A stretch of DNA of 64,000 nt from Podarcis tiliguerta (lineage: Eukaryota): assembly GCA_965153285.1 (NCBI GenBank), contig OZ229110.1. The stretch is one strand, 5' to 3'. The notes beneath the pieces are model-generated. The model saw only the letters and a list, made by a program, of their open reading frames with translations. It was not told the origin of the DNA and ran no database searches. The position numbers were made by a program, and so were the translations under genes. Positions 1 to 55,546 of the stretch are shown here, in pieces; position 1 is the first letter of the stretch; each line of letters opens with the position of its first letter.

Positions 1-1114
1 GAGGTTTAGGAGTACAGTGTGATTTCAGTTTCCTTTAAAACAAATGGTTATAGCTGAGATTTAGATTCAACAACATGCATAAAAGTTGTTATTTAGACCA
101 AATAGAGCATAGCAAGTTACCCAAGGCCACTAGAGCCAAAACATACAGTACGGGTTGTATGAATAATTCACGTGTGTTTATCCTATTCTTTCCACTTTTG
201 TATGTGATGAGCACCTTACGCTCTATAACATGGAGGAGGTTATGCTTTTTTTTTGTTTTGCTGAGTATTTGCCATGTATGCATGGATGGGAAGTCTCAAT
301 TGGATCCATGGAGGCGGAAAAGGTACATATGTAGTGTGCAAGGTAATAGGATATAGCAGAAATATCATGGGTACCTGCTAAATTAGTAGTGTAAGATGGT
401 CCTGAGATAGCTGGTGGAAGTTCTGGTGTCAACCTGCAACAAAAATCTTGCAAAACGTTTTAGGGTCCGTGTGTGTGTATAGAGGGAATGCTTTCTGCAG
501 GAGCTCTCGCAAAGTTGTCTACTGTTTCCTCAGTCCCTTCTCCCAAGCCAAGTTGTAGTTTTGGTTCCTCTTAGTATCCCACTCTTCCTTTGTTTCTGCT
601 TTGTCTCAGTCCCTTTTACTTATTAAAATCCACTGATGATATCTTCAGCAAATACAAAAAGGGGGGAATTAATTGAGAGAAACTTAGTAATACCCATTTT
701 AGAGGTTCTTGAGTCACAGTCAGATTGCTAGACTCAATGACCTCTCTTTTAAAGAAGTAAATCCATGTAATTTGTTCTGTATCAAAGAATATGTGCTATG
801 TATATTTTTTCTTTTGGAAGAATGATTGAACAGGGCCTCCAAATACCTGTTTTAAGTGGAAAGATTACATTAAAAAAAAAGAACATGGTACTTGTGTATG
901 AATTCCTCCCCCCGCCCAAAAAAGCCCCCACTTTCTGTCACCTTCTACATTTAGTGGTGGGAAATGGAAAGCTTTAAGTGAATAGAGGAGAGGAACCTCA
1001 GCAAGCTGGGATTGAATGTGCAATTGGTCGTGTATCTTGTTGTAACGGTTTGGGTGCTTCACATTGATTTCCTTTTACCCATTTGTGCTTTGTGGGATAT
1101 TGAACTCAAGGAAC

Positions 1115-1523
1115 ATGACAGAACGAAAGAGGAAGCCCAAGTTCTCCAGGGAGGAGCTGGACATTCTGGTCACGGAAGTGACTCGGAACGAAGCCAGGCT
1201 GTTTGGAAGGGAGACGATACGTCTATCCCACGCAGACAGGGACAAGATCTGGGAAAGTATAGCCAGGAAAATCACATCGGTGAGCCAGGTCCCCAGGTCT
1301 GTGAAAGATATTAAGCACAGGTGGGACGACATGAAGAGAAGGACCAAAGACAAACTGGCATACATGCAGAGGTCCCTCTCCAGTCCCAGCAGCCCGGGGA
1401 GGCCCTCGGCCATTGTCCTGACCGCCCACGAGAGAGCCATCGAGTCGACGCTGCATTCGTCACGCCAGATGCACGGCTTCCGGAGAGCGGATCTGGACGT
1501 GGTTGACAGCCCATCAACCAGCT
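1115..1523 (+). CDS. Myb/SANT-like (Myb_DNA-bind_5; MYPOP/NAIF1/TSNARE1-like, Harbinger-derived) protein, coding exon 1
   Basis: ATG at 1115. Translation KRKPKFSREELDILVTEV...LFG...RDKIWESIARKI...PRSVKDIKHRWDDMKRRTKDKLA follows the MYPOP/NAIF1 pattern (RKxxFSxxE..W..IA..R...KxRWxDxKRRTKxK). Donor T|GTAAGT at 1523/1524 (phase 1). Candidate acceptor AG at 1109-1110. Confidence 0.88.
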
Positions 1524-3595
1524 GTAAGTATTACCTCCCCCCGGTCCCCTGCTGAACAGATCAGTTCTGACCAAAGAACTGTATGTATTGCACGAAAGGT
1601 CAGCCCTGCCCTGCTAGCGAAACTGTTATCTCTGGTTGGCGTTTCCTGTTGCGCTTTGGTTCTCTCCACCCTATTTCCTCCCTCAGCCTTGGGTTAGGAA
1701 TAGATTGTAGGGACCTGCACCTTGAATGAACTGGCATGAGCTGTGCTACTTCGGTCAAGTTAGCAAAAAAGGGATAGGTATTGTCAGTGCCCATGGTCTG
1801 TGGAATGGCAAATGTGAAGATGCTTGGAAGGTTGTGTGCACACATTGACGGAGGGAAAGGGAAGACCAAACGTTTGAACCAAATCTTCATCCTTAATAAA
1901 TCCAATATATGGGTCACTAGATGAGTTCACAAGCTCATAAATGTGGATATTTCTACATTGCGCAAAGGTGGTAGTATGTGGAGTTGGCGTATCCATGGGC
2001 AATTTGAATGGGCAATGCCATTGATCTTTCCACCAATGTACCATGATCAAGGGATTGCCAAAACCAATCTTACAGCGTGCAAATGTGTGTACTTGAATCA
2101 TACAGTACTTCATCTCCTATCAAGAATTTCCACATTTGTGATTATGTGATCTAGCCCTGGCACTTGTATATACAAAATGGTGCTTGGGTTTTGTCCATTT
2201 TAACATCTTACCAGGTATTCGTGATATTCAGGACAGCCTTTACAAATGAGGGGTAACAACTATTTTTCATTGCTCTTGTGGAAACAAGAGATAGGCAGTA
2301 TGCTTCTGGCTTGCAGCTTTTGATCTAGTAGACTAAACCTGAAGAAAGTTCCGTAAGTGCATAGGCTGCACTTATCATCAAGGTCTTCTCTAGTTTTCCC
2401 TGTTCAACAGGCAGCACTACGGTTTAGGCTTATAAGGCTCAGCTAGCCATACCGCAAATATAATTAAGCAGTGGGAGAGGTCTATGACCCATTGCCTCAT
2501 GCTTAGTCTTAGACTGGACCACTAGCAGTTCTAAATGCTAGCCACTGCAACAGAAATTCTTGCCATAAAACATCCAATGAGATATGGCCAAACTCCTATT
2601 TGTTGGCTTTATTATTCTGTACTAGTGTTAAACTTCCTCTTCTGGATTATATTTGATAAAAAGGAAAAGCATGCAAAAACTGCACTAAATCACTTTTTAC
2701 AGTGGTGAAGCCTCTTGTCCCTGATAAGGAAGAGCTTTGGTGTGTGCAGAAACTGGAAATGTGGTGTTACCACTTGAGAGCTGCTTCCTGTAAACCAAGG
2801 GAATGGGTAGATGATATCAGTGTGGTGCCCTTCCAGATATTGCCCAAGCCAACATGGCCAATCCTAAGGGATGCTGGGAGTTGGAGTCTAGCAACATCTA
2901 GAAGGCATCACACTGATCTTTCCAGTATTGTCTTCTTCAGCTGCCATTGGCTTTCCAAGATTCTGACAGGGGTCTCCCCTTTCCTTGCCACTGAGATCCT
3001 TTATTGGATGGTAGCTGGGACCTTTTTGCAAGCTAGAACCCCCCCACTGAACTATGGACTGCTTTGGGTTTACTAGTCCCTTACAAATTGACAAAGATTA
3101 CTTAATGGTGGATGACTCCTCACAGGAAATGATTCTCTGCAATTGCTGCTGCTGAATGAAATGACTTTGGAAGCTCTTAATATAAAATCAGTATGTGATT
3201 AGATTGATAAAGCAACAGTCATGGTGGTGGTTGTGTACACTTGAAAGTCTACCATTAACTCTCCTCTTATCTCAGGATGTGCATAATTTCAGGTTTTTTG
3301 TTGGCATTTTGTGCCCCAAAGAAAAATCTATAGTTGGCCTTGCATCTAGTGACTTCAAAGCAGTCATCTTAGAGGGATGCTAAGCAAAATGCGTTTTGTA
3401 AATGGACATTTGCATTACACAAGAAATTCTTTTTAAAGGAATCAACGCCATAGTCTATTCCTTAAAAAAAATCTCTTTCTGCATTTTAGCAAAATTTCAA
3501 GTTGAGTGCTTGCTTCTCCTGAACTTATTGAAATAGAGATTTTCAGAAGAAAACATTCATGTAAATAATCTGGTGTTTTCTGTTTCTGTTTCAAG

Positions 3596-4167
3596 CTGAC
3601 GAAGATGTGGAGGTGCCTGGCCCCTCGCAGCAACACCACTTTTCATCACTGCAGAGGCACGCAGAAGAAGCTGACCTTCTCTCCATACCATCATACCTTC
3701 ATTCTTCTTCTCTGTCAGATCACTCGGATGTTATTAACCAAAGGCAGGAAATGAGGCAACCAAACCCATGTTCCCAGTCCTCTTTTAGGCCCCCTCGGCC
3801 CTATGCCCAAAGCCCACCCATCTCTGGTTTTGATCGCCAGCTCTTTGACACCCACATTGAACAGACGGAGCTCTTCAGGCAGTTCTGTCAAGAGCTGGTA
3901 ACAATCCACAGAGACATGGCAAATAACATGCTTGTGATCAGCCAGAGGATGTCTGACCTGACTGGGCAGGTCAGCCAGATGTGCCAGACCTTGACCAAAA
4001 TCAAGGACGAGCTTCAGACTTTGAACAAGGGTCAGGTTCCCAGCACTAGCCAGGTGGCAGCACCAGTGAACCCTTCTGAACCCAAGGCAGGGAATAGCCA
4101 AAGCCATCCCAAGCAGACGCCTCTTCCTCGGACGACTAGGTCACGGAAGAGAAAGCACCACTTCTAG
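3596..4167 (+). CDS. Myb/SANT-like protein, coding exon 2 (S/P/Q-rich linker, coiled coil, C-terminal basic RSRKRK)
   Basis: Acceptor tgttttctgtttctgtttcaag| ends at 3595. The phase-1 join T+CT gives S-DEDVEVPGPS, in frame with ORF 3607-4167. 409+572=981 nt, i.e. 326 aa plus stop. Heptad-like segment LFRQFCQELVTIHRDMANNM...LTKIKDELQTL. Confidence 0.82.
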
Positions 4168-5228
4168 CTCCCTTCGTATTAAACAGGAAAGAGTAGCTGA
4201 TGTTGGGTTAGGAAAAAAATTCATTAGCATGACTATTGGGGAAGATCAGTGAGAGTTCCCTATAAAGATGAATATAAATTATGACAGTTTAGCAGTAGGC
4301 TTTGCTCTGTGCACTTGGAAGCGCAGCACCTTGCTTGCCCGCCCTGTATTAGAAGCTGTGAACACCTTAAATACGCACAGGAGAAATTTAATGGCTGTCT
4401 TGCTCTATGGAGTCAAGGTGCACATAGATTTGTTTCCTTAACCTTTTATGCTCAGGAAACGTTACTTAGGCTTTGCATTTAAATAATTGCACTTAAGGTA
4501 AAACAATCCACAAATATATGCTCCCCCCGCCCCTTCTACTTCTGCAAATGCACTATGTGGATCTAAGAGCCGTAAACGGACTACATTCTTTGCCATAGTT
4601 AGCTATTGTGGTTTGGGTTTGAGTACTAAAGCTGGGTAGATACTGACAAAAGGAGGGATGTGGAAAAATAGGAAAAAACAATGCCTGCTTCTGAAGCGCG
4701 CAAAGCACCACCCAGCACACTGGACTTACTCATCAGCTTTTTCTGTCAGGTAGCAAAAGCAGTTATGGCAGGTGTCAGCCACTTCAGGCCTTTAAGAGGC
4801 GTTATCTAGCAGAAATTGGTAACATTGCAGTCCATAAAAACAAGTGCATTCTTTTGAAAGTAACTTGCACTGAAATCAGTTTGCTAAACCTGCTAGAAAC
4901 AAGTTTAGAATAAGGTAAACCATGGCCAGCCTGCTAATTTTTCTACCTGGTCATGCCAGACTACATCTTCAGTTCTTTAGGATATTAATAAGAGTAGTTC
5001 AGTAATCCCTCAGCTTAAATGGGGGTTACGTTCTGGAGATCGCACCTAAAGCCAAAATTGCATATAGGCAAAACACATTGGGTACAATGGCGTGTGGAAT
5101 TGCCAAAGCTTCTTTTCTTCTGGATGCCCATCCCCCTTTCCACCCATATATATGTCAAAGCTGAACGCACACAAGTTAAATGTGCGCAAGTTGTGGGCTT
5201 ACTGTACACCAAGCTGTACCTTTTTTTA

Positions 5229-5234
5229 AATAAA
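5229..5234 (+). terminator. Poly(A) signal of the nested Myb/SANT-like transcript
   Basis: AATAAA preceded by two TGTA motifs (about 5203-5218) and followed by a T-rich tract (ccttttttgttg, about 5250-5262), roughly 1.06 kb after the stop codon. Confidence 0.55.
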
Positions 5235-8200
5235 GAGCTCACAAATTTAACCTTTTTTGTTGAGGGATGGCATTTTCAGAAGCAACTAACTGGAGCATGC
5301 TCAAGTGCTGGCTTTGACACCAATGTAATTCTCCTGACATCTTCAGAATTGCTCTTTTGTTTGCAAACGCGACGCCGTCTTTTTAAGCCCCTTGTCTTAT
5401 CACAGGCTTGCTGGTGCGTGTTCTCCTTATACCAGCTTCCTGCTTAACAGGAGTGCTGTGCATGCATTCAAATGAACATGTAAGGGCTTAAACTGGTGCA
5501 GCAGGTGTTACCCACTCTCACCCGTCCCCCAGACTTCCCACATTGAATGGTTTCTGATCTTAGGGAGGTATGCAAGTGTGTCCAGCCAAATGCTCCCAAG
5601 TCTTCCTACCATACACAGGAAAGATGCGGAAGGAGATGCGCCTGGTACGCACAGGGTGGGTGCGGATGGCGTGTGCATGGTTGCTTGCCCAGTTTAAGCT
5701 CTCATACAATTCTTTTGAATCCAGGAATAGGGCAAACAGGAGATGCAAGCTACTGCCTATGTGAATCAAGATTACTGTCTACTTAGTTCTAAATGTAGTC
5801 TAGCCTGGCCTGTTAGGACTCCACTATGGTTCTGGAACTGGATGTTTGATCATATTCTCACACCTGCTATAGTACATAAGCTAAAATTGCATGTGCACTG
5901 TACACTTTTCATACCTGCACCTGCTCTTCTGCACCCTACGGATGAGATGTCAAGAGTTGAGACACAATCCCCTTATAAAGTCATAGCTGCAGTAGTCTAC
6001 ATTCCACAAGGCCCTTATGGCAGTGAGGATAAATTTAGGGTGCACACTTATCGGGGAAGGGAACCCTAATGAACTCAAGGAGACTTCCTTCTGTGTAAAC
6101 ACACATAAGATTGTGCTGTGAAGGTTAAAGCGTGTTGGGGCAGCTCCACCTCCACTTTCCCTGGGGCTACTTAAGGCCAGAGTTCCCTGAGAGGAGAAGG
6201 CCAGGCCAGGGTGTTGGTGCCACCAGCTCCTGAAGTAGACCTGAGATTAATTTGACCATTTGTTTTGTATTAATATTTTAACCCGCAAACCTCCTTGGAT
6301 GCCTTGATAGAAAGGCTTCATATAAATGCGATAAATAAATGATGAAAATATAATCAGACTGGTTTTTGAAAGCCTATTTCAGAGGAAACTTCACTTTTCT
6401 GCAGTGTTGCCACCTATTTGCAGGGAATTTAAAATCCATATGGCATTAAATGTGGATCACTTTTTTCGTGAATTAACAAAGTTCAGTATTTGTATACTTC
6501 TGAGGCAGGCATAGCACCAGTTCGTTGCAAATTAATGTGAAGGAAATAATGGCGCAGGGTCTGGAAGTGCCTGGTCCTCAGAGTTTCCACCACCGAAGTG
6601 GATGGGTTTAGCTCCCCCCCAAAGCAAGTCTAGATTGTAAGCTCCTTGGAGTAGAGACCTCTTTCTTTTGCTCTTCTTAACCCTATAAAGGACCATGTCC
6701 ATTGATGGCACTCTATAAATTAAATAATAGGAATGTCGTCTGTTACAAAACTCCTGGTGTCTCATATGTGCTTGTCTCCAAGCCATTAGGATGAATAAGG
6801 TTGCTTTGCTTTCCTGTTTCAAACTTTTGTGATGTGTTGTTGATTCAGCTATCAGTTCTTGGAGAACTGAGACAAAAAACAAGTTGGCATTCTCAGCCAC
6901 CGCTGACCTTTTCTGAGAAGCTCAGGTGCTTGTGGCCTCTGGATTTCTGGCACTTGGGAGAAATGTACACGCTGCGTGCTTTCTTTTAGAACAGGATAAG
7001 AAGCTGTTAAAGCTAAGCTTGAGGAATCTGGGATGTTAATATATAGAGAAACATATCTGGGCAAATGAAGGTATGCCCCATGATTTATTTATTTTCCATG
7101 GGGAATTAGCAACAAGGGATGAGTTCTTTGCTCTCTGAAATGCTTTCTTTGTGATCATCCCCACAAGGGGATGTTGTATGTGATTGTGTATACATGGCAT
7201 GTTTTAAAGTGCCCCTTGTTTGACTGAAATGCTGTGCTTGCCCTAATATTTCTTATATATGATGGAAATTTATGAGTATTTTTGTTAACAATAAATATAT
7301 AATACTTAAAACTCAAACTCTTTGTTGGGTAACGTCTTTCCTTCTCTACATGGGTGCTTTCAAGTTGTGTTCTGGAGCCTGTCTTCCATTTCAAGGACAT
7401 TTCAAGGATAGTTTACAGCTTACATATCTCTGTATGGTGCACAAATAGCACTTTCCTATCAGGACACATTTGTCAGATTGGGGTGGGTTTTATGTTTTTT
7501 GTTTTGCTATATTTTACGGTCAATTTGAGGACAAAAAGCATTTGCTCATCAAGAAGGAGCAAAAGATAGGTGAATGGTTTGGAAATGTTCCCAGTGTGAA
7601 AGTTTGTTCATGTGCCTAAAGATCTACAGAAAAAGCTACAAATCTGCCCATTTGCATTGTTATACAAAAAGCGACCTCAAAAATAGTGATGTTCCAGATT
7701 TCATCTGCCTCGTTTATTATTTTATTTATTTCATAAAAATTTATATACTGCTTGAGTTGTAGAAAACCTCAAAGTGGTTTACAAAACTGATGAGATTACT
7801 ACAACTTCTAGCACCATACAGCTTACCTGAAACAGCAATAAGGATTTCATGAGGATCTTGCAAAGATAGTTTGGAGATCTCAGCTGTCCATTTAGGTATA
7901 TCCAAGAGTTGAGCATCCATGCATGAAAATTTCTTACAGCTTTTTCAGAGACATCTTCTGAATCTCTAATTAGGTTCTGGGATTGCTTGTCACAGCTTGT
8001 CACAGCCTGTATAAAAGCACATATGCATACATAAAATGGTGACTCGTTCTTTCAAACAGATTACTACAACAGTTGCTTTGGGACAGGGAGACCCTTGGCC
8101 AGTGCTTTTTAGCTTTTCCAGTGCATCTGGAAAAGAAGTAGATGTTCATTTAACTGAATGGAATTGTTTAATTTAGGACTGATTCTGAGCTTTTCTTCCT

Positions 8201-10043
8201 TTAAAAAGAAAATACAGCAATCACCACCAGGAAAGAATAAACCCCTGGTCAGAGCAACTCCTGTGTCCAAATGTATGAGGAGTGCATCTGATTTCAGCAA
8301 ACCCATGAAAACTTAGTGCAACTGGGGGAAGGAGTGAATCTTGAGAGTCGCTGCTTAGCCGGAATGGCACCATCTTTCCCATCTCTGCCTTCCTCTTGGC
8401 TTAGCAAATCTAGGCAATGAGGCTGGGGTGGGGGGAGCTTAGTTACAAAGTCAAGCTGCTCTGTTCTTCTTGACTTAACCCACAGCAGTGATGGGGAATT
8501 TGCGGCTCTTCAGGTGACATTGGGCTCCCCATCATCCCCCTCCACCTTGGCTGATGGTCAGAGGTGATGGGGATTTGTAGTCCAAGAAGAGTTGGAGGGC
8601 CACAGCTTCCCCATCTCAGCCCTGCGGTGTCCAGATCCCTTGGCTTTGTGCATGTGTCTTCTCCCCAGTCACTCAACAATATCGATGGAAGCAGCCCCCT
8701 CTGTATATTGGATTGTGAAAGAAGTTGCCTGCACACTCATAGCATGTGTGTAATACATTGAGTTGTCAGTCGGTCAGCAGTAAACTAAAACCGAGGCAGA
8801 GAGGCGAAGGGCAGCTCACTCGTATCCGAGGGGTCTGGATCAGTGCTAAATACGCCAAGTTCTAAACAGCTTTTGTCCTGTCACTTATCTGCTACGCAGT
8901 AAACGAAGGTTTGGAGTCTAGTGTTCACCTGTCTCTTTTCTGACACTATGATTAATTATTTTGCAAAAGTGTAGTGCAGTGCAGTATGAGCATGACAGCC
9001 AAGTATGGTCATCGGACACATATTAGAAGGATATTAATGGAAGTGGCTGGTGTGGTATGCGGGGAAGAGCAGAAGCTGTTTCTGCTGTTAAAAGGGAGTA
9101 TTCCCAGGAGTAACTCTTATGCTAGCAGAAGTAATGCGGCATGACCTCTGCCCTCTCTCTTATTCAAACAGTGCCAGCTCCGCAATATAGATGCAATCCA
9201 CTAAGCACAGTTTGTGCACAATCATCAGTAACTCTCAATTAAATTTGAAACATGGCTCCCATGCAATTACTGGAAAAATACTCTTGCTCCAGCAACCTCT
9301 CTCTCTCACTCAGTACCAAGCCTAGGTTTTAGTAACGTACGTTTTTCATACTGTCTCTGCCCCTCACCTGATAACTTGCTTACTTTTATGCATGCAGATT
9401 ATCGAAATGTGCACACCAAGGATTAGTGTGACTAACTAGGTAAAGCTAATGTCTCAAGATGGCTAAGAGATGCAAGCAAGTTTGTTCTTGATTCAGATCC
9501 TCTCCCCCATGGACTCTTAAGGTTTCTTTAGGCAAGCCACTGTCTCTCAGCTGCTTCATCTGTAACATGGCAGCCAGTGGTTAAAGTGGTGGGCTTGGAT
9601 GGAGGACACTTGAGTTAAAATCCCTACTCTCCCATGTAGCTCACTGAGTGAAACTGGGCCTGTCGCTATCTTTCAGCCTAAACAACCTCAGTGTAGTTGT
9701 GAGCATAAATAGGAAGGAACTGTGTATGCCTTCTTGAGCTCCTTGTAGAATAGACAAGCAATAAATTCATTAAAACAAGGGAAAGCAAGACTGATAAACT
9801 TTACAGCGTTAATAAGAACTACCCCTTTGCCTGCCTCCAGAAAGAAATTGGCTTTGGGGGGGTCTGGAGAAATCCTGGAACAGCATATAGGGAAAGGAGA
9901 GGATAAATTGTTCCATCAGGCCAAGCAGAGATGCTTGCACTGATGGCATGATCCTCCTTGGCACTGCTTTGAATTCCACCCAATAACTTTGGAACACAAG
10001 TGCTATATAATAAGAACTTTCTGCATTTGCCAGATAAAGAGTA

Positions 10044-10269
10044 CAGTGGTACCTCAGGTTAAGTACTTAATTCGTTCCGGAGGTCTGTTCTTAACCTGAA
10101 ACTGTTCTTAACCCGAAGCACCACTTTAGCTAATGGGGCCTCCCGCTGCCGCTGCGCCACCAGAGCATGATTTCTGTTCTCATCCTGAAGCAAAGTTCTT
10201 AACCTGAAGCACTATTTCTGGGTTAGCGGAGTCTGTAACCTGAAGCGTATGTAACCTGAAGTACCACTG
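10044..10269 (+). mobile_element. Tc1/mariner (Tigger/pogo-like) MITE
   Basis: TA|CAGTGGTACCTC...GTACCACTG|TA terminal inverted repeats; homologous to the copies at 24077, 49797, 53479 and 62884. Confidence 0.88.
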
Positions 10270-11340
10270 TACTGCCTGCATGCTGTTTTGTAATATTTTC
10301 ACTGACAAATAAAATCCCTGCCATGGATTTTGGTGTTACCCTTGCGCTGTAACTTAGTGGCTTGGTGATGGTAGACAAATGGTTTTCTCATGAGGTTGCC
10401 AGAATGACACCCAACTTTGTGAGAGCCAGTTTTTGGTGTTTGCCTATTTTTTTGCGCTCATGACAGTGGCGATTGTGTGGTTGCCTGACAGCAGCCTTAT
10501 CCCTTGCAAGTCTTGACAGTAAGAAATCCGACCACCACCTTTGTCCCTTTCCACTTGGAAATCCTTCATTTCCAAACAGATAGAGATATGAAATTAGATC
10601 TGACATTGTTTTTATATCTTTTTTACTGTTGCTGTTTCTTATTGTTGTAGTGCTTTGGAATGATTTGTGGGAAGCGATTTGTCAATGATATCAATCAATC
10701 ACTGAGAAAAACTGACAGGGGGAGCTGAGGCTGGTGCAAAGTTTTCAGATGCTGAAATGCTTCTCGCTGAGCAGCTGCTATGTGGAGGGTGCTCAAAATG
10801 GCTTCTTTGCAGCAGCTTGTTCTGTATAGGCCCTTTACAAGAATTGGCTGCTGGCTACCAGAGTGGGAGTGAAGCTTGAGAAGCAGTGAGGTCCAAGGGC
10901 CCAGCATCTAAGGCCATTGTAAACACTTTACAAGCAGGCATGTGCTTTTTGGCTATTGAAGAGGAACCTGTGGCTCCCCAGGTGTGGGAATTCAACTCCC
11001 ATTATCCCTGACCATTGACCATGTTGGCCAAGGCTGCAGGGAGTTGCAGTGCAGCCACGTCAGGTGGGCTTCAGGTTCCTCGTCCCCGTTTTAAATGTGC
11101 TGACAACATTGGTGTTACTAGACAGAGGCAACAGCTATATACCAGATTCAAGAAGCTGTTTGATATTCCTTCGGTGTGCATGTTATTTCCTTGTAGCTTG
11201 TTGCATATCATTATTCATGCCATCCAATACTCCTCTGCCGGTGTCTCCCTTTTGAAGGTCACTCATGCTGCACTGTGGCTTCTGTATGTTTCCTTTCTGT
11301 CTAAGCCTCCTTGTAAGTCAAAAACTGTCCTTGTTCTCAG

Positions 11341-11528
11341 GTATGTGGCCATATCCCGGGAGGAGAGAGAACAGAACCTCATGGCGTTCCAGCACAGCGA
11401 GAGGATTTACTTCCGGACCTGCCGAGACATCCGGCCAGGGGAGAGGCTAAGGGTCTGGTACAGCGAGGATTATATGAAGCGATTGCACAGCATGTCTCAG
11501 GAGACCATCAACAGAAACCTCACAAGAG
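11341..11528 (+). CDS. PRDM11: PRDM11 internal exon: C-terminal part of the PR/SET domain
   Basis: Acceptor ttgttctcag| and donor G|GTGGGT; 188 nt. Encodes (R)[62 protein letters not shown], which closely matches recalled PRDM11. Confidence 0.95.
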
Positions 11529-11735
11529 GTGGGTGTCTTTCCCTTCCCCTTTTCTGTCTCTGAGTTTGTTCTAGCATTCTTCTCTGACAAAGATGGCTTC
11601 TGAAGCAGCTACAAACATCTCTTTTTGGGTGACAGGGGGGTTAAAACCAGCAAACAAAACATTCCATATCACAAAATGACTGAAATGAGCAGAATGCCTG
11701 GTTGAAATGAAATCCATCAAATAGCACTGTTGGGG

Positions 11736-11738
<3 letters not shown>

Positions 11739-11768
<30 letters not shown>
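11739..11768. repeat. (TG)15 microsatellite
   Basis: Read directly from the sequence. Confidence 0.95.
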
Positions 11769-11769
<1 letters not shown>

Positions 11770-14700
11770 CAGCTGATTTTATGCCTGCCTGTGAGTCAGA
11801 AGCATTAGGTCGAAAGAAATGCCCTTTGCTGGACTGGATTTTCTGGCTTGTGGTTCATTTTGTAGGGTCCTCTTCCTGTTGCAAAATAAATACCTAGAGG
11901 GACTTCACAATATTATACTGGTGACAAAGAGCAGCAGGCATTTATACACATCAGAGATATATCTTTTTATATAATAAAAATGTAAGGATGTCATCATGAG
12001 AGCCCTCGTCGGAGGATTTGTTGAGCCACATCACAATCCTGGAAGTCTGGGTGGGGTGGGGGAGCAAAAGTGAAGGCAGGTTGCACAACAGCAGTGGCCA
12101 TGGATTGGGAGTGAGAAGAGAGAGACACTGAGAGGGGAAGAGTGGTGATTTAAAACAATGGCAGAAGTTTGAGTAAATCGGAGATGAAGAGATAGCAATG
12201 GCAGCAGGGGGTTGGCAAGTGAAGTGAGACACAGCCCCAGGTGTAGAGATAGATTGGTGGCAGTGCCCATTAACTGTTAAGGTAATTTGAGGACAGGTTA
12301 TTTGCGGCTGGAATTTCTGCCAATAGTAGAGGAATCTCCCCCTTTTCTTACATGCGTTCTGTCCATAGGCCATCAGTCTAAGACTGACAGGTATTTGCTG
12401 TATGGGAACTGTGGGTTCCTTCCTAGAGTGAGAGCCAGCTTCCATGAGTCAACCTGAAGGTGCTCCTCAACAGTCTCCAGCACTGATGAAAGCGGTTGGG
12501 AGAGAAGAATGGGGAGGAGGGACAAAGTTAAGTTGTGGTGGTCGCTTTTTCCTCCTGCTGCCTCCGCAACCCTTCGTGGGGTTCATCGGTGCAAAATGTA
12601 ACAGGTGTCATGGCCCCGCAGTATGAGACGACGTTTGAAAGTGTGTGTGAGGGCATCATTCAGTTGGAAGTCTCTTGAACGGGACTCCACAGAGTAGAAG
12701 GGCCCACACACTTCCACCCTGGTCTTGCGCAGCTGCAGTCCTGTCTTCTTTGGTTTCACTAAAAGAACTTTCCCAAGTTCCTAGCCATGCCCAGTTCTGG
12801 GGGTTGGAAGTAAACACAGCAAAGGTAAAGGAAAGTCCTTTCTGACCATTCCAATAAAAGGATCTCAGGTGTGTGTGGTGGTGGTGGTGGTGGTGGTGGG
12901 GAATTGCCTGAAATCTCAGAGAGCAAGTCATTATTGAACTAGGCAGGCCAATGGTATATCTCAGAATCAGGCAGTTCTGTATATCCTATGGGCCATGTCT
13001 GCATGAGAACGTACTCTGCTGCTAAATCACAAGTGCAGGGCGCAGAGGCTGAATGAAAAGGTACAGTCTGGCACAAGGGTGTCTGTGGCACAGAGCTCTG
13101 TCTACAACTCGAGTTGGGCTTTATGTGCAAAGACAAGCTAGAAATATTGTGTGTGTGTGTTTTTAAAAAAGTACAGAAATACCTTGTCAGTGTCCGTTTC
13201 ATCACCACAAACCGCAACAGGAAATCCTATGCAGTCACCTCTTGAGTATTCTTTCATTGAAACACCCGTGTTCCCGAAACGGTTGACATTCATTTGGTTT
13301 ATGACAGCGCAATATATTATGTAATTCTACACATAGAAAGAGTAGCTGGAAGCCAAATTCAGCATTTGGCTTTTAAAAAATTCAACACTAGAACAACGTG
13401 CAGAATTCATGCATCTCCGTTTAATGAGTATTTTTCTTAAAAGTTCCTCGGCATTTTGATTTAAGAAAGTGGCTTCAAATCTTGATAAGGTCCAACTGGT
13501 GGATACCCAAGAGTTCTTAAATTTGGATCTGAACTTGCTGCCTTCCTGACAAAAATAGGCAATCTTCCCCTGACTGGAGATTAATCCCAATATGGGGTTT
13601 AATTGCTCGTAATGGTGCAATTCACATATTGGGGCGGTTGGCAGTCCTTCACCATGGAAGAGTTCTTGCAGTTGTGGTGCATTTTATTGGTTGCCTTTTA
13701 TCTAGTACATACTCTTCATTGGTTAATTGTCCCCGATTAATTGGGCAGCACTTTTTAAAAAAAGTAAAAAAGTTAAGTAATTTTGATTCAAGAATCTATG
13801 GGTGCAGACATTGCTGTATAAAAGGCATTCCCTCTTCTCTATTCCAAAGACCGTGATGATGGTTGCTGCAGAAGGTGCTTCCCTAACCTAAAAACAGAGA
13901 GGGGATGCTTTTCTTCAGAAGCACTGCTTTATTCATATGCAAATGTATACAGAGTCAATTACTTAATTGACTAAAACCACCAAATGACTAAAATAGCAAC
14001 CTTTCTATAAGGCGTGTAAATTAAGTGCATTTGCACATATTTAGTCATTTCCCTTAATTTGTTTGTCTCGTGTAGTTAGTCATGGGGTTGAAATTCAGAG
14101 TTGTGCAGAGCAGAATTCCACAAAGTGGATGCCGCTCTAGGCAGAAGAGGAGGCATGTGAATTTTGCTGATTTTCTCTTCCCCTTGTAGTGTTACGTGCC
14201 TTACCCACCCACCCACCCCCATCTGCTCTGGACGGTCCAAAACATCGTAGGAGGGGGATGCAGGAGAAGAGGAAACAAGTGAAAATTACCTCTCTCTGCC
14301 CGCCCACCCACCCACTCCGGTCCATTGGAGTATCCAGTTTGCGCACAACTGCAGCATGCACTGGATCCAACTTACTTTTGTAAACAAAAAGGAGCTCTTC
14401 TATTTACAGAATAGCCCATCTGGACCCAAACCATAGCCCCCAATACCTCCTACGCCTGGCACCAAAGCTTTGCCTGCCACCACCTTCTGAGATTCCATCA
14501 AGTAGTCCCCAAACACATTTTTAATTTAATTTTTCCTCCCATGTGTGTTAGTAACGCGTTTTGTGTTTACAATGAAGATGGGTCCCCCAGGTTGATTGAT
14601 TTTGTACTTAATACCAAATTACATACTATCATCAGATTACATGCACTGCTGTCCATATTTAGAATGGAAATAGAAGCCCAGTTGTGATCTACTCTTGTCC

Positions 14701-15801
14701 AAGAATACAGTGTAATTTGAAAGGAAAAAAATCTGCCATGTCAAATCTGGACCTCCAGCCAGTTGTCATACCCTTAAAAACTAATTAGGCTGTGACATGG
14801 GCTCAGTCTTGCCTGGCTTCTTCATCTCTATAGCCAGACCCTAAGACTCGCGGCGTCAACAGATAAATGCTGATAATGAGGTGCCCATGCACCATCACAC
14901 TATCTGGAATTGTACTCACCTTCGTAGCAGCTTTAGACTTGCAGTTGTTCAGGACTTTGTTGCCAGCGTTCGAAATTTCTATATAGCTCTTACAAAAGCA
15001 CACACGTGTTTCAAAATGAAATATATATACATAGCAGCATAAAACAGCACCTTGTTTGGGAAGCAACCATGTGTCTTGATGCTTGGAGTTATTTGCAAGA
15101 TAAGAAGAAAGATGGAAATTGAACCAAACCCATCATCTTCTGAATTTCCAGGTAAGGATATATGGCTACTCCCTTTGTTTTAAGTAACTGCTAATATGCA
15201 CAATCTCTCCACTTTATTTTGGTGAACTTTGGCTAGGGGCCATACATTTAGCAATCTTGTCGGGACCAACCTTGGAGGTCACGCAGAAGTCCTACCTCAT
15301 TTTGCTAGTAAGTGATATGGGAAATGAGAGAGTGATTTCCTTGTGTTCTCACGCTTCCTGTCACTCTGGAATAGAAAAATGGTCCTTCAAGCCTACAGGT
15401 TTCACATGGAAATCTCTGCATCACACCCTTCATGTATTATTTGCCGGATACGTTTTACCAAGTAAAAGTTATCTTTTCAACAAACCAACACATTGAACAT
15501 TATTGTCTCATTCCAGCACAGGTTAGCTGCCTGTTATTTTAGACCACCTTCCTATAGTTTGTCTTCTCTTAAAACCATCTGAGGCCTACTTCTGTATGGC
15601 TGTCTCCTAGAGACTGTTTCCCCTTTTAAACAAATCTCCAGTCTTAGGTTTCCTGAGACCCTCATTCCAATAAGTTTCCTTATTGGTAATGCAAACATGT
15701 GAAAAATGAAGATTTGTGTGCTCCCAGTTTGCTTTTGCTTTGGGGTGAGGAATGTTGTGGAATTCTCACTGATAATTCCAACTCCGATTTTTTCTTTCTA
15801 G

Positions 15802-16437
15802 GAGATAAAAAATTACTAAGGGAAAGGTCAGAAAGAAATGTAGAAAACCAAGACGATATGAGCTACCCCCTCGAGCTCACCACGTCAAAGCAAGGGAAGA
15901 GTTCCTACAAGCGCAGCTTTGAAGAAGGTGTGTCTCAACCCCAAACGAAGAAGAAGAAAATAGACCTCATCTTCAAAGATGTTCTAGAGGCTTCTCTAGA
16001 GCCAACAAAGATGGAAGAGCACAAGGTGATAAAGAATTCTGCTCCTTCCACTAGAAAGTCCTCCAGATTTCAAGCGCGAGATGCCTCGGAAGGTTGTGGG
16101 CCTGGTATTCATCACAGCTCTCCAAATCACAGTAGAGGCAGGAATGAGGGTGAGTGGAAAGTCCCCCGCAGCTCTAAAGACATTGGCCTGCTGGAAGACG
16201 AAGGGGAAGAGGCCTTGTCATTTAAAGTGAACAGCCCCACCGATCTGTCTCTGGCATCGACTCAGGATGATGCCCTTGAGATCCCGACAACTTCATTGTG
16301 TCCCAACTGTGTACGGTTGAAGAAGAAGATTCGCGAGTTGCAGGCTGAACTAAACATGCTAAGATCTGGCAAGTTAGCCGAGGCACCTCTACTACCTCCT
16401 CAGGTACCTGAGTACCAAGCATTTTCATACCCCTCAG
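15802..16437 (+). CDS. PRDM11: PRDM11 penultimate exon (KKKKID basic motif; CPNC plus coiled coil)
   Basis: Acceptor tttctttctag| and donor G|GTAAGT, phase 1 at both ends. Contains KKKKIDLIFKDVLEASLE and PTTSLCPNCVRLKKKIRELQAEL, as in PRDM11. Confidence 0.93.
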
Positions 16438-17205
16438 GTAAGTTACACACAAGAAAAGTGTTCCTCAAACACTGTATAAGGAGTGCCATTTTGTTTGACA
16501 TTCGTGACTAAATATGTTCCAGCATTGAGTGTTCTGAGAAGCACCTGAGGTCTCGTTGGTGGGTTTCATGAAGCAGGAACGTAGTCCTCTGAGCAAGTGG
16601 TCTTGGGATTGTGACTGTAATGATGAAACATGATGTTTCTTTTCACTGTAATCAGGCACCTTCAATAAAAAAATTCCATTGCAGCGAATTTGTTTGCTGT
16701 ATTCTTGATGCATTCCCTTGCAGGAGAAAGAACAGCATATTGTTGTTTTTGAATCTTACCTAGAAATTGCAATTGACTCTCTTATGTTGAATATGAAATA
16801 TACTGGCTTGTGGCATGTGTGTGAAGTATGTCATTAATATTTTCCCTTTTTCTCTTATCTAAAGGATTTTGTTGGTTGAATGCAAGTGTGAAGCTCTTTT
16901 GATTTCATTTCGGGACATGCTCTGTCATTAATGCCCTTTTGTGAATATGAAAGTAGTCAGAATATCAGAGTGGCGTTTGCTACCCAGGCTTGCATGGACT
17001 CTTGGAAATTATGATTTTAGATAATGAGGGGGGCTCAGAATGTTTATAAACCAAAATTTACTCTAGTAACATGTTCATTTTTTGCTGCAAATGGCATGAG
17101 TAGCCAAGGGGGGCATGTGGGATAGTTGTCTAACAGTTTTGTGTTGTTTCTTGCAACCCTACCTTAAACCTTCTCCATTTCCCCCTCATTTCTTTTCTTT
17201 CGCAG

Positions 17206-19367
17206 CTTCGGAAAGCATCATGTCTGTTCCCACCATCATGGAGGACGACGACCAAGAGGTGGATTCAGCAGACGAATCTGTCTCCAATGACATGATAACA
17301 GCCACAGACGAGCCTTCCAAATTGTCCGCCGTCACCAGGAGGATTCGGCGCTTCAAGCAAGAGTGGCTCAAGAAGTTTTGGTTTCTGAGGTACTCCCCGA
17401 CGCTCAACGAAATGTGGTGCCACGTCTGCCGCCAGTATACAGTGCAATCCTCTCGGACTTCGGCTTTCATCATCGGCTCCAAGCAGTTCAAGATACACAC
17501 CATCAAACTTCACAGCCAGAGCAACCTCCACAAGAAGTGCCTGCAACTTTACAGGCTCAGGATGCACCCAGAGAAGACGGAAGAGATGTGCCGAAATATG
17601 ACTCTGCTCTTCAACACAGCCTACCATTTAGCGATGGAAGGCCGGCCCTATTGTGACTTCAGGCCGCTTGCGGAACTACTGAGAAAGTGCGAGCTCAAAG
17701 TGGTGGATCAGTATATGAACGAGGGAGACTGTCAAATCTTGATCCACCACATTGCGCGAGCTCTTAGAGAAGATCTCGTCGAACGGGTCAGGCAATCTCC
17801 CTTCCTCAGCATCATTTTGGACGGGCAGAGCGACGATTTGCTTGCTGACACGGTTGCGGTTTACGTGCAGTATATCAGCAGCGATGGGCCTCCGGCCACT
17901 GAATTCCTCTCTCTCCAGGAGCTGGGCTTTTCTGCAACCGACAGTTACATCCAAGCGTTAGATAGGGCTTTCTCTGCCCTGGGAATCCGCCTGCAGGATG
18001 AAAAGCCGAGTGTTGGTTTGGGAGTCGATGGTGCTAACATCACTGCCAGCCTTAGAGCTAACATGTACATGACAATCAGAAAGACTCTGCCTTGGCTGCT
18101 CTGTCTGCCCCTTATGGTACACAAGCCGCACTTGGAGATATTGGATGCGATTAGTGGGAAAGAGCTTCCTTGCCTGGAGGAGCTAGAGAACAATCTGAAG
18201 CAGTTACTCAGCTTTTACCGTTACTCTCCCAGGCTGATGTGCGAGCTGAGGGTCACTGCTGCTACTCTCTGTGAAGAAACTGAGTTTTTGGGAGACATCA
18301 GAGCAGTGAAGTGGATCATCGGGGAGCAGAATGTCCTCAACGCTCTGATCAAGGATTACTTGGAAGTGGTGGCCCATCTCAAAGATGTCAGCGGCCAAAC
18401 ACAAAGAGCAGATGCGTCTGCCATTGCCTTGGCTCTCCTGCAGTTCCTCATGGACTACCAGTCAATCAAGCTGATCTACTTCCTGCTGGACGTCATTGCT
18501 GTGCTTTCGCGCCTTGCCTTCGTCTTCCAAGGCGAATACCTCCTTGTGTCGCAGGTGGATGACAAAATCGAGGAAGCCATCCAAGAGATCAGCAGGCTCT
18601 CCGATTCTCCCGGCGAGTATCTCCAGGAGTTTGAGGAGAGCTTTCGAGAAAGCTTCAATGGCGTCGCTGTGAAAAACCTGCGGGTGGCGGAAGCCAAATT
18701 CCAGTCCATTCGAGAAAAGATATGCCAGAAGACCCAGGTGATTCTAGCTCAAAGGTTTGAACCTCGCAGCCGGGCATTTGTGAAAGCCTGCCAAGTGTTT
18801 GACCTCGCAGCTTGGCCGAGGAGCGCAGAGGAGCTGATGAGCTATGGCAGGGAAGACATGGTGCAGATTTTTGAGCACCTCGAAGCCGTGCCAACCTTTT
18901 CCACCGAAGTGAGCAGAGAAGGCATGGACCCCAGGGGGAGCTTGCTCATGGAATGGCGGGAACTCAAGGTGGATTATTATACCAAAAATGGTTTCAAAGA
19001 TTTAATCGGCCACATTTGTAAATACAGGCAGAGGTTTCCTCTTTTAAACAAAATCATCCAGATCCTCAAAGTTCTTCCCACCTCCACAGCCTGCTGCGAA
19101 AAGGGGCGCAATGCCCTGCAGAGAGTGCGCAAGAACAATCGTTCTCGGCTCACCCTGGAGCAGCTCAGTGACCTTTTGACAATTGCTGTTAATGGACCAC
19201 CTATTGCCAACTTCGAAGCCAAGAGGGCACTAGATAGTTGGTTTGAGGAGAAATCTAGCAATAGTTACGCACTGTCTGCAGAAATGCTGAGCAGGATGTC
19301 CTCCCTGGATCAGAAGCCAGTGCTGCAGAGCATGGACCACGGGTCAGAGTTTTACCCTGATATTTAG
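17206..19367 (+). CDS. PRDM11: PRDM11 last coding exon: TTF-type zinc finger plus domesticated hAT-family (ZNF862-like) transposase
   Basis: Acceptor tcttttctttcgcag|. Encodes ASES...RRFKQEWLKKFWFLRY...WCHVC...HSQSNLH (zinc finger), then IILDGQSD, GVDGAN and LPTSTACCEKG (hAT core and dimerisation region), ending EFYPDI* like the long PRDM11 isoform. Confidence 0.95.
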
Positions 19368-37614: not shown

Positions 37615-38215
37615 TTTTCTCCCTGTCTCATAAAACTAGAACACGGGGTCATGTAAGGAAGGTGAAGGGAGGGAGGACCAGGAGAGACGAAAGGAACTAG
37701 CACCTGGTTCCTCTCACAGCACATGGTTTAGTTATGGGATTGGCTACCTCATAAAACTAGAACACAGGGTCATGAAAGGAAGGTGAAGGGAGGGAGGACC
37801 AGGAGAGACGAAAGGAACTAGCACCTGGTTCCTCTCACAGCACATGGTTTAGTTATGGGATTGGCTACCTCATAAAACTAGAACACGGGGTCATGAAAGG
37901 AAGGTGAAGGGAGGGAGGACCAGGAGAGACGAAAGGAACTAGCACCTGGTTCCTCTCACAGCACATGGTTTAGTTATGGGATTGGCTACCACAAGATGTA
38001 GCTATTTACACCCACTTGGATGAATTTAGAAGAGAATTAATCACATTCATGGAGAGTAAGGCTATCAACAGTCATGATAGCTGTATCTTACCTCCAGTAT
38101 CAGAGGCAGTATGCTGCTGGGGACCAAGCATCAGGAGAGGGCTATTGCACTCATGTTCTGCTTTGCATTTCTCATAGGTATCTGGGGCTCCTATAGGAAC
38201 AGGATGCTGAGCTTC
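37615..38215 (+). mobile_element. CR1 LINE 3' fragment containing a tandem triplication
   Basis: Homologous to the CR1 3' region at 42650-43060 (cacagcacat.gtt...ccacaag...aaggcta). Confidence 0.75.
37627..37989. repeat. Tandem repeat, 3 x 121 bp, nearly identical units
   Basis: Units starting ctcataaaactagaacac begin at 37627, 37748 and 37869. Confidence 0.95.
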
Positions 38216-53720: not shown

Positions 53721-54381
53721 TATTTGCAGACCAATTGCCCACAAAACTCTAGGGATGATAAAGTGGTTCCTTCTTCACCCACCCTAAAACTCTACATGCT
53801 GTCCTTGCAGGAAAACCATTGCAGATAACCTTCTGAACTTTTGCAGGATCCATATACTCAGAAGGGCCTCCCATGTCTGTAAATTTATCCAAAGTTATGT
53901 CAAAAAAATAAAGACATAGTAAATGTTTCCATTTAAGGAACAAACAAATCAAAATTAAAAGTGTCCAGCAACACACACACAAAAGACCCCTAGATGTATT
54001 TGCCTATCATTTGCAGCATTTATCCTCTTTGGAGAAACTATAGTGCCTACAAATTTTATCCACTTCTGTCAAAAGGGTTGGGGTAAATTAAATCTTGTTT
54101 TTCCTAACAAAAACTCAGACCCAAAGTCTAATTGGCAAGGTCCTGAATCACTTCAGAATGAGGCAGTTACTTTTCCAAAGCATGACATCAACTCCAGACT
54201 TGTGGCCAAAGGTTTCAAGAACAACCTTGCAATTATTACTATGTAGTAAAATGCATTCAGGACTCTAAAGTCCTTGAACAGTGTCCACATTTGGGTTCAG
54301 CATCATCGGCACACAGCATATTCACTCCCTCCCAGAGAATACAATTTGTTTGAATAATAGCTTATATAATTCATAGGATAC

Positions 54382-54695
54382 CTTGTCAAATGTTTTCATC
54401 TTCTCACACTGTACTGTTCCATATGGCTCCCCCACATTTGCCAGACTCGGTTTAATTTCCCCCACGATGCTGTGCCTAGAGAATTTATCACAGTTTCTCA
54501 AGGTGAGAGTCAGCATTGCCTCAGGTAGCTCCTCCTCCTTTACTGGAAACAGTAGAGCTTCCTCCCAGACAATCTGGGGCTTCTTCTTCTTCAACACAGT
54601 TTGAGCTTCAGAGGTGCTGGACTTGGTCACCAAAGTGCCTAGGATATAGCAATCACAGCCATTGTTCTGGTCTCCTGCTGCACTTCCATATGTAG
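54382..54695 (-). CDS. SYT13: Synaptotagmin-13 exon 4 (C2A)
   Basis: Acceptor ctgcag| and donor AAG|GTATCC. Encodes GCDCYI...EAQTVLKKK...WEEALLFP...LTLTLRNCDKFSRHSIVGE. Confidence 0.93.
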
Positions 54696-55546
54696 CTGCA
54701 GAACCAGGGAAAGAAAGATAAACTGTACTTAAAATGAATACCAAAGTACTTTCAGGAGAAAAATTGCCGTTTTTCTCTTTCAGCATTTTGATTTAATAAA
54801 AACGATTCAAACCCATCCTTGTGCAAGGATAAAGGTTCTCTCCCCCCGCCCACCCTTATTGCCAGTAATTGGTGGTATTTGCATCTCTGAGATCTTATGA
54901 TGGTTTGGAAACTTCAATGGCAGTGAAAAAAGGAGTAAGAAAAAAGCAGTCCAGCGAACTGTTCGATTTGAAATCTGAATTTAAATCCCAGGTTTGCTTT
55001 CAGCTCATTGGCCCATTCAGATGTAATAATCCTGCTAGAATGAACCATGGTTTAGTGAGCTGCAAATTACCTATGTGTCTGCCTGTGCACTCCCTCCAGT
55101 TTCCCAGGACACCTGAACCAGGAAATTGTGGCTGAAGGGCTTTAAGATCCTGGTTTGTAGGGAGCCCTTAATCTCAGTTCAAATACCAGAGAGAAAACTG
55201 TGATTTAAGAAACCTTTTGCTCAAGCAGCATGTGTAAGGGGAAGAAGGGAGAGACAAGGAGAGAGCGCAGGGGCACATACACATATTACTGGTCCACCAA
55301 ACTGCAGTTTCTTTGCACAAGGCTCAAAATGTCTTGGCTTCGGTTTGCCATCTGTAAAACAAGATGTTCAGTTACGTGCTTTGCGGGGGTTTTGTATATG
55401 AAATGAGATGGTAACAAAATGTGGGATCCTAAATTTGTTATGGATCTGTTTACTACTCATATCTGTAAGGAGAGCTTGTTGTATGATTTTGCTTTCAAAT
55501 GAAAAGTTGCCACAACTGATAAAATGCAAAGATATGGGCTCCTTAC

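Follow-up and report, generated by a model that had tools for sequence, protein, structure and literature searches.

Background

Fusions between host genes and transposases that were born by alternative splicing include SETMAR, PGBD3-CSB and KRABINER (Cosby et al., bioRxiv 10.1101/2020.05.07.082677). PRDM11 has been described as the one PRDM protein with no zinc fingers or DNA-binding finger array (PMC4760075). Etchegaray et al. 2022 (PMC9392472) also devoted one sentence to it, marked "data not shown", naming it with MYPOP, ZSCAN20 and TSNARE1 as a putative Harbinger-Myb-derived gene. Here we examine the 3' part of PRDM11 in a 64,000-nucleotide (nt) stretch of DNA from the lizard Podarcis tiliguerta (contig OZ229110.1; hereafter the window), where the gene lies on the plus strand and where one upstream exon very probably has a choice between a Myb-type end, starting at position 1111, and the remainder of the gene, starting at position 11341.

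The predicted arrangement resembles the fusions of Cosby et al. in that a host intron contains a DNA-binding module of putative transposon derivation, the host exons would be captured by an acceptor at the 5' edge of that module, and parental and fusion transcripts would coexist. It differs from them in two respects: the module captured at PRDM11 would be a Harbinger accessory Myb gene and not a transposase, and PRDM11 has a second, hAT-like, alternative C-terminus. PRDM11 is absent from that preprint and from those of its supplements that were examined. Like the Harbinger Myb-derived genes (NAIF1, the MSANTD2 family, TSNARE1, MYPOP), the Myb unit in the window has a Myb_DNA-bind_5 domain, a likeness set by the domain and by paralogues. 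Like the domesticated hATs (ZNF862, ZBED5, FAM200, ZMYM1), the C-terminal exon of PRDM11 has an N-terminal zinc finger (PF25431) and a hAT-dimerisation-like segment at the expected C-terminal place, although its Pfam hAT match is sub-threshold.

The nearest described relatives of all are PRDM11 Myb isoforms that are already annotated, in Podarcis muralis (XP_077785033.1), Pogona vitticeps (XP_072842083.2, isoform X5, 509 amino acids, aa) and mouse (A0A0A0MQD9), in which the junction NWMR/N(M/V), the two Myb exons and the stop are all as in the window (here and below a slash marks a splice junction). There is no substantive difference from these; the window comes from a closely related lacertid and its sequence is not identical. 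The fusion isoform is therefore not new: RefSeq, Ensembl and UniProt already carry it for dozens of species, among them mouse and a close relative. In the literature searchable here we found no discussion of two alternative transposon-derived ends of PRDM11, and the value of the present analysis lies in drawing attention to an under-discussed annotation, not in new sequence knowledge.

A Myb unit inside the PR domain intron

The intron that splits the PR/SET domain contains a two-exon Myb/SANT unit (1111-1523 and 3596-4167, plus a 3' untranslated region, UTR), and the Myb domain and the host domains of PRDM11 sit on separate exons. Exon A (1111-1523) opens G/AAC ATG ACA GAA CG, in which the G ends an Arg codon, AAC encodes Asn and the ATG stands at 1115. 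It encodes a Myb_DNA-bind_5 domain (PF13873, E 4.5e-20, 71.8 bits against a cutoff of 21.7) and ends at a GCT/gtaagt donor. Exon B (3596-4167) starts after tttcaag in a frame continuous with exon A, and encodes a disordered linker, a conserved helical segment (FDRQL..QTELFRQFCQELVTIHRDMANNM) and a basic tail (TTRSRKRKHHF) before the TAG stop at 4165-4167; it is 97.9% identical to residues 315-504 of the protein model P0469. The 3' UTR, with a predicted extent of 4168-5250, has ATTAAA at 4178 and AATAAA at 5229, and for PRDM11 the poly(A) site of the Myb unit is a site of intronic polyadenylation.

The exon with which this unit would compete lies at 11341-11528. It reads YVAISREE...RVWYSEDY...NLTR, supplies the end of the PR/SET domain (PF21549 profile positions 73-121 of 123, E 9.8e-20) and is skipped in the Myb isoform. 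It starts G/TAT GTG at 11341, directly after ttctcag. The exons at 1111 and 11341 each provide the third base of a split codon and are therefore of equal phase. The donor exon, ending in ...NWM-R, is outside the window (TGGATGAG was not found in the window letters), and its phase is set by protein models, which read NWMR/YVAIS (P0021) and NWMR/NMTERK (P0469). On this evidence, and that of the orthologues described below, we consider it highly probable that the ...NWM-R exon can be spliced to 1111 as an alternative to 11341. The use of the junction in this species is extrapolated from models and contigs of its orthologues, and any account of how the choice is regulated is a proposal.

Fusion proteins in orthologues

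The window exons were searched singly, each as its own query. Exon A was queried as the residues of 1169-1522, and in local BLAST 1127-1167 was masked. In 95 database proteins, PRDM11 ...NWMR is joined directly to N(M/V)..RKRKPKF. The lineages represented are squamates (among them Varanus, Pogona and Salvator), tuatara, turtles, a monotreme (echidna), a marsupial (koala), a frog (Ascaphus) and, with many species each, birds and placentals; at least three annotation sources give one identical junction.

For example, an unbiased HMMER scan of the residues encoded by 1169-1522 against 1.84 billion representatives matched an Ensembl protein from an owl (P0140, 516 aa; Myb match at 204-321) that runs from ...DGTDETKANWMR/NMAERKRKPKF... 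to ...TTRSRKRKHHF, which is exactly the fusion predicted. Its 90% cluster holds the Ensembl owl model together with RefSeq "PRDM11 isoform X4/X5" entries of gull, ducks, goose and storks. Similarly, when region 25-330 of a gecko orthologue was the query, a word-indexed search returned proteins of approximately 500-530 aa with both PF13873 and PF21549. In the fusions, PF21549 is covered from position 5 to position 73 of 123 and the PF13873 domain begins six residues further on; the replaced end amounts to about a third to ~40% of the PR fold and includes RVWY.

The closest case, found by cluster look-up, is isoform X3 of PRDM11 in Podarcis muralis (XP_077785033.1, 504 aa), which reads TSNWMR/NMTERKRKPKFSREELDILV. 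It aligns to 1109-1522 and 3595-4164 of the window, with 97.9% identity in exon B, and its 504 aa equal the length predicted from the window (177 + 1 + 326). Long (X1/X2) and Myb isoforms of PRDM11 are annotated together within species, as in Podarcis muralis and Pogona. The sequence-only reading of the window had proposed that the upstream donor might join 1111 and so yield the PRDM11 N-terminus, a truncated PR domain and the Myb domain, and these annotated tetrapod isoforms, that of Podarcis muralis included, support the proposal. Of the product assigned to the 11341 route (full PR domain, finger and hAT transposase), the long PRDM11 is indeed annotated and its finger matches PF25431; the hAT part has only the sub-threshold Pfam match taken up below.

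Logan, in which public sequencing runs are gathered in assembled form, contains contigs of 1.6-3.7 kb that encode complete fusions of 461-513 aa, and one of these open reading frames (ORFs) is identical to the mouse UniProt entry A0A0A0MQD9. The contigs are too short for genomic DNA and would therefore represent assembled mRNA. Runs merely guessed to be RNA-like gave 0.29-0.37 of 900-4300, where ~0.33 would be expected from two exons plus the 3' UTR, and were given no weight.

The probable acceptor at 1109-1110 and its conservation

In orthologous models the AG at 1109-1110 is joined to the ...NWM-R exon, and P0469 aligns from 1109. The preceding AG is at 1004, and there is none in the 103 nt between them (1006-1108). 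Among the 4,497 AG-to-AG gaps in the window, whose mean is 14, only four reach 100 nt or more. A ttgat lies at 1064-1068, with its A 43 nt upstream of the acceptor AG. Pyrimidines make up 64% of positions -50 to -4 and 55% of positions -25 to -4 relative to the AG, a moderate tract, and the last ~20 nt are purine-rich, with gtgggatattgaactca immediately before the AG.

What had been claimed for this site from the letters alone was borne out: the stretch of about 100 nt without AG, the branch-like ttgat at exactly the place given, the G-AAC-ATG opening in phase with the G-TAT-GTG of the 11341 exon (both read directly in the window), and the split codon at the end of the preceding NWM-R exon, which the models P0021 and P0469 confirm. 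The pyrimidine tract is present as well, but it is only moderate and gives way to purines next to the AG.

The junction is common to all 95 fusion proteins, 84 of which have N directly after the split Arg. At the next position sauropsids, the monotreme, the marsupial and the frog have M, and a V is found instead in Anolis, one bird and most placentals (which read NVAPLAE), with the frame kept throughout.

Conservation of the acceptor itself was assessed from ORF translations of other species' genomic contigs. Lizards and mammals alike conserve the 45-63 nt that precede the AG, corresponding in the window to ~1046-1110, a block conserved across amniotes. The translation before the AG reads GCFTLISFYPFVLCGILNSRN in the window, ISFYPIVLCGMFN[SP]RN in birds and VIYPIVLCGIFNPRN in mammals, and farther upstream conservation is lost. 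We read this as constraint on the region from branch point to AG and not on protein, the residues being a translated T/C-rich tract.

This bears on how the Myb domain could be translated in species that have no ATG at the start of the exon. There, some stand-alone models begin at a non-conserved M within the translated pyrimidine tract (MLCGIFNPRNV.., MTVIYPIV..) and others begin at an internal MRLSHADRDK, losing part of the Myb domain. Since most placentals have no ATG at the start of the Myb exon, the fusion is the conserved route by which the whole Myb domain is translated in them.

Alternative interpretations

The alternative that survives best is that the lizard Myb unit is an independent nested gene with its own intronic promoter, and that the fusions of other species are prediction artefacts or rare functionless read-through. 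Several observations favor it and weigh against a fusion. Stand-alone models of 321-366 aa, named "myb-related transcription factor, partner of profilin-like", exist in many species, and a squamate mRNA-like contig of 1,443 nt (P0006) encodes only a 328-aa Myb protein. The ATG at 1115 has an A at -3 and is preceded by an in-frame TAA at 1043-1045 with no other ATG between, which makes it a clean stand-alone start. Three older lacertid RefSeq stand-alone models (P0333, P0470, P0472) run unspliced through the AG from ~1016. By its composition the acceptor would be a weak site with a distant branch point. In addition, gene-prediction pipelines can spread models by homology, so that the 95 proteins are not independent of one another.

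Against a nested gene stand the fusion ORFs on short mRNA-like contigs, the recurrence of the same junction in at least three annotation sources, and the placentals, most of which have no ATG at the exon start and whose stand-alone starts fall in the pyrimidine tract or truncate the Myb domain. The three lacertid models are flagged LOW QUALITY, and with the in-frame TAA and no ATG before 1115 their N-terminal extensions look artificial; a Podarcis muralis model, PRDM11 isoform X3, now spans the same exons as a fusion. There is also no CpG island in the region upstream of the Myb exon (1-1000). We regard an exclusively independent gene as unlikely. A separate Myb transcript is probably made as well, and the locus would then give both products.

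The Myb exons could instead be an in-frame cassette of full-length PRDM11, entered at 1111 and left at 4139/4140 for 11341, so that the PR, Myb and hAT parts would share a single protein. The alligator "isoform C" (P0124, 1273 aa) has this form, reading NWMR/NMAERK...ARTTR/YVIIS, and the window carries the equivalent donor, ACTAG/gtcacg (4135-4145, plus strand), phase-compatible with the PR exon. Isoform X4 of the barn swallow (P0136) is a second model of the cassette type. These are two models against 95 terminal fusions, and they use different internal sites: P0124 leaves the Myb unit at the ...TTR codon, and P0136 enters it at ...ADR/DKIW. Moreover, the GTCACG donor is weak, exon B contains by chance six GTs of compatible phase, and the insertion would split the PR fold. 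Both models may be prediction artefacts or rare isoforms, and we judge a cassette very improbable.

Finally, it is hardly credible that the AG, the long run without AG and the matching phase arose by coincidence and that the conserved upstream block is a 5' UTR or promoter of a Myb gene. Chance would match the phase in one case out of three and the pyrimidine tract is moderate, but all 95 fusion models, from frog to mammals, use exactly this AG, and the AG-free run is among the top 4 of 4,497 gaps.

Putative transposon origins of the two ends

The Myb unit is putatively of Harbinger type, given its PF13873 domain, the statement in PMC9392472 and its neighbourhood among TSNARE1 and MYPOP-like proteins, which are included among its nearest paralogues. 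Searches for MSANTD5, MSANTD6 and MSANTD7 were without result.

The closest non-tetrapod homologue of the unit is found in the coelacanth Latimeria, in models annotated as "protein lin-37 homolog isoform X1/X3" (P0330, P0147). Identity is 64% in exon A; exon B matches with E 2e-30 and contains the same FDRQLL..FCQELV..HRDMA segment. These models begin with a LIN37-like N-terminus and continue into the Myb module, so that a different host gene is modelled with the same module. In the bichirs Polypterus and Erpetoichthys, a related Myb_DNA-bind_5 module occurs in models named as isoforms of "inactive serine/threonine-protein kinase VRK3" (cluster P0154), with an N-terminal zinc ribbon and then the Myb domain; Pfam detected no kinase domain in them. 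Here, too, the module may have been captured as an alternative 3' end.

A hAT origin of the long C-terminus is likely, on the basis of a sub-threshold Pfam match and language-model similarity. The finger of the C-terminal exon matches PF25431 (zf-C17orf113; E 1e-8, 35 bits against a cutoff of 29.5). The match to PF05699 (Dimer_Tnp_hAT) lies at the expected C-terminal position and scores 17.6 bits, below the 21.4 cutoff, with E 0.003. Some PRDM11 orthologues are named "ZNF862-like" by NCBI. In the Atlas, language-model features had a similarity of 0.97 to DUF4371, FAM200-ZBED5 and hAT RNase-like clusters, which we take as no more than a lead towards an RNase-H-like catalytic core. An AlphaFold2 model of the 719-aa C-terminal exon, built with 17 orthologues of at least 94% identity, had a mean predicted local distance difference test (pLDDT) score of 31 and was unusable, and sequence searches of the PDB gave no match for the hAT-like part, returning only PR-domain structures (e.g., 3RAY), for the profile.

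The two ends also differ in conservation. The hAT-like exon (17206-19367) retains at least 94% aa identity over 719 residues among lizards, turtles, crocodilians and birds, whereas exon B of the Myb unit is far less conserved (45-74% identity).

Proposed mechanism and implications

In the mechanism that we propose, the upstream PRDM11 exon, which closes with ...NWM and the first two bases of the split Arg codon, would offer one donor to two possible acceptors. Splicing to the AG at 1109-1110 would give a protein of ~504 aa that keeps the N-terminal part of PRDM11, zinc knuckle included, and the first ~60% of its PR domain. A Myb DNA-binding domain and a helical C-terminus would come next, and the transcript would use the stop codon and the poly(A) site that belong to the Myb unit. 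With this stop in the terminal exon, nonsense-mediated decay would not be expected. Splicing to the acceptor at 11340 would complete the PR domain and lead on to the exon with the zinc finger and hAT-like C-terminus. The choice would set a weak upstream acceptor, coupled to intronic polyadenylation, in competition with the constitutive acceptor downstream at 11340, and the Myb unit could also be transcribed alone and translated from the ATG at 1115.

Tentatively, a broader proposal can be made, which we hold with distinctly less assurance than the splice itself: that the "nested Myb gene" is in essence a pair of alternative 3'-terminal exons belonging to PRDM11, and that the fusion is the product chiefly under selection. 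The case would be clearest in Anolis, one bird and most placentals, the lineages that lost the ATG of the exon. According to isoform, DNA binding by PRDM11 would then go through a Harbinger Myb domain or a hAT-derived finger, and the module would perhaps have been captured by LIN37 in the coelacanth and by VRK3 in bichirs too.

In annotation, PRDM11 has two mutually exclusive C-termini, both apparently transposon-derived, with one isoform missing the end of the PR fold. Functional work on "PRDM11" has been described without distinguishing isoforms, and a two-ended gene bears on the interpretation of knock-outs, antibodies and expression data. It would also be a very old case, at least tetrapod in age, of a gene that captured transposon-derived modules through splicing.

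Remaining PRDM11 exons and other features of the window

The assignment of the gene to PRDM11 follows from the PR/SET exon and the C-terminal exon, which are collinear with annotated PRDM11 X1/X2 of Lacerta and Podarcis at 98-100% identity. The ORF at 17115-19367 (750 aa) has 98-100% identity with PRDM11 of Lacerta agilis, Podarcis and Zootoca. By local tblastn, residues 177-239 of Lacerta PRDM11 X1 fall on 11341-11528, residues 240-452 on 15802-16437 and the rest on 17206-19367. Residues 1-176 had no match in the window, so that the N-terminal exons of the gene would lie upstream of it.

The middle exon (15802-16437, plus strand) is included in X1 (1171 aa) and skipped in X2 (959 aa), and it had no Pfam match. 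The last coding exon (17206-19367, plus strand) encodes the 719 aa with the zf-C17orf113 finger and the hAT-like C-terminal region, with its stop at 19365-19367. The long PRDM11, with full PR domain, zinc finger and hAT-like C-terminus, is the annotated form, at 98-100% identity to the lacertid X1/X2.

Farther along the window, an ORF on the minus strand at 54322-54786 contains a C2 domain (PF00168, E 1.3e-7) and reads ...TLTLRNCDKFSRHSIVGEI...; this probably represents an exon from a gene of synaptotagmin type, arranged tail to tail with PRDM11. In mammals the neighbour of PRDM11 is SYT13. Lastly, a tandem repeat at 37627-37990 consists of 3.0 copies of a 121-bp unit with 98% matches.

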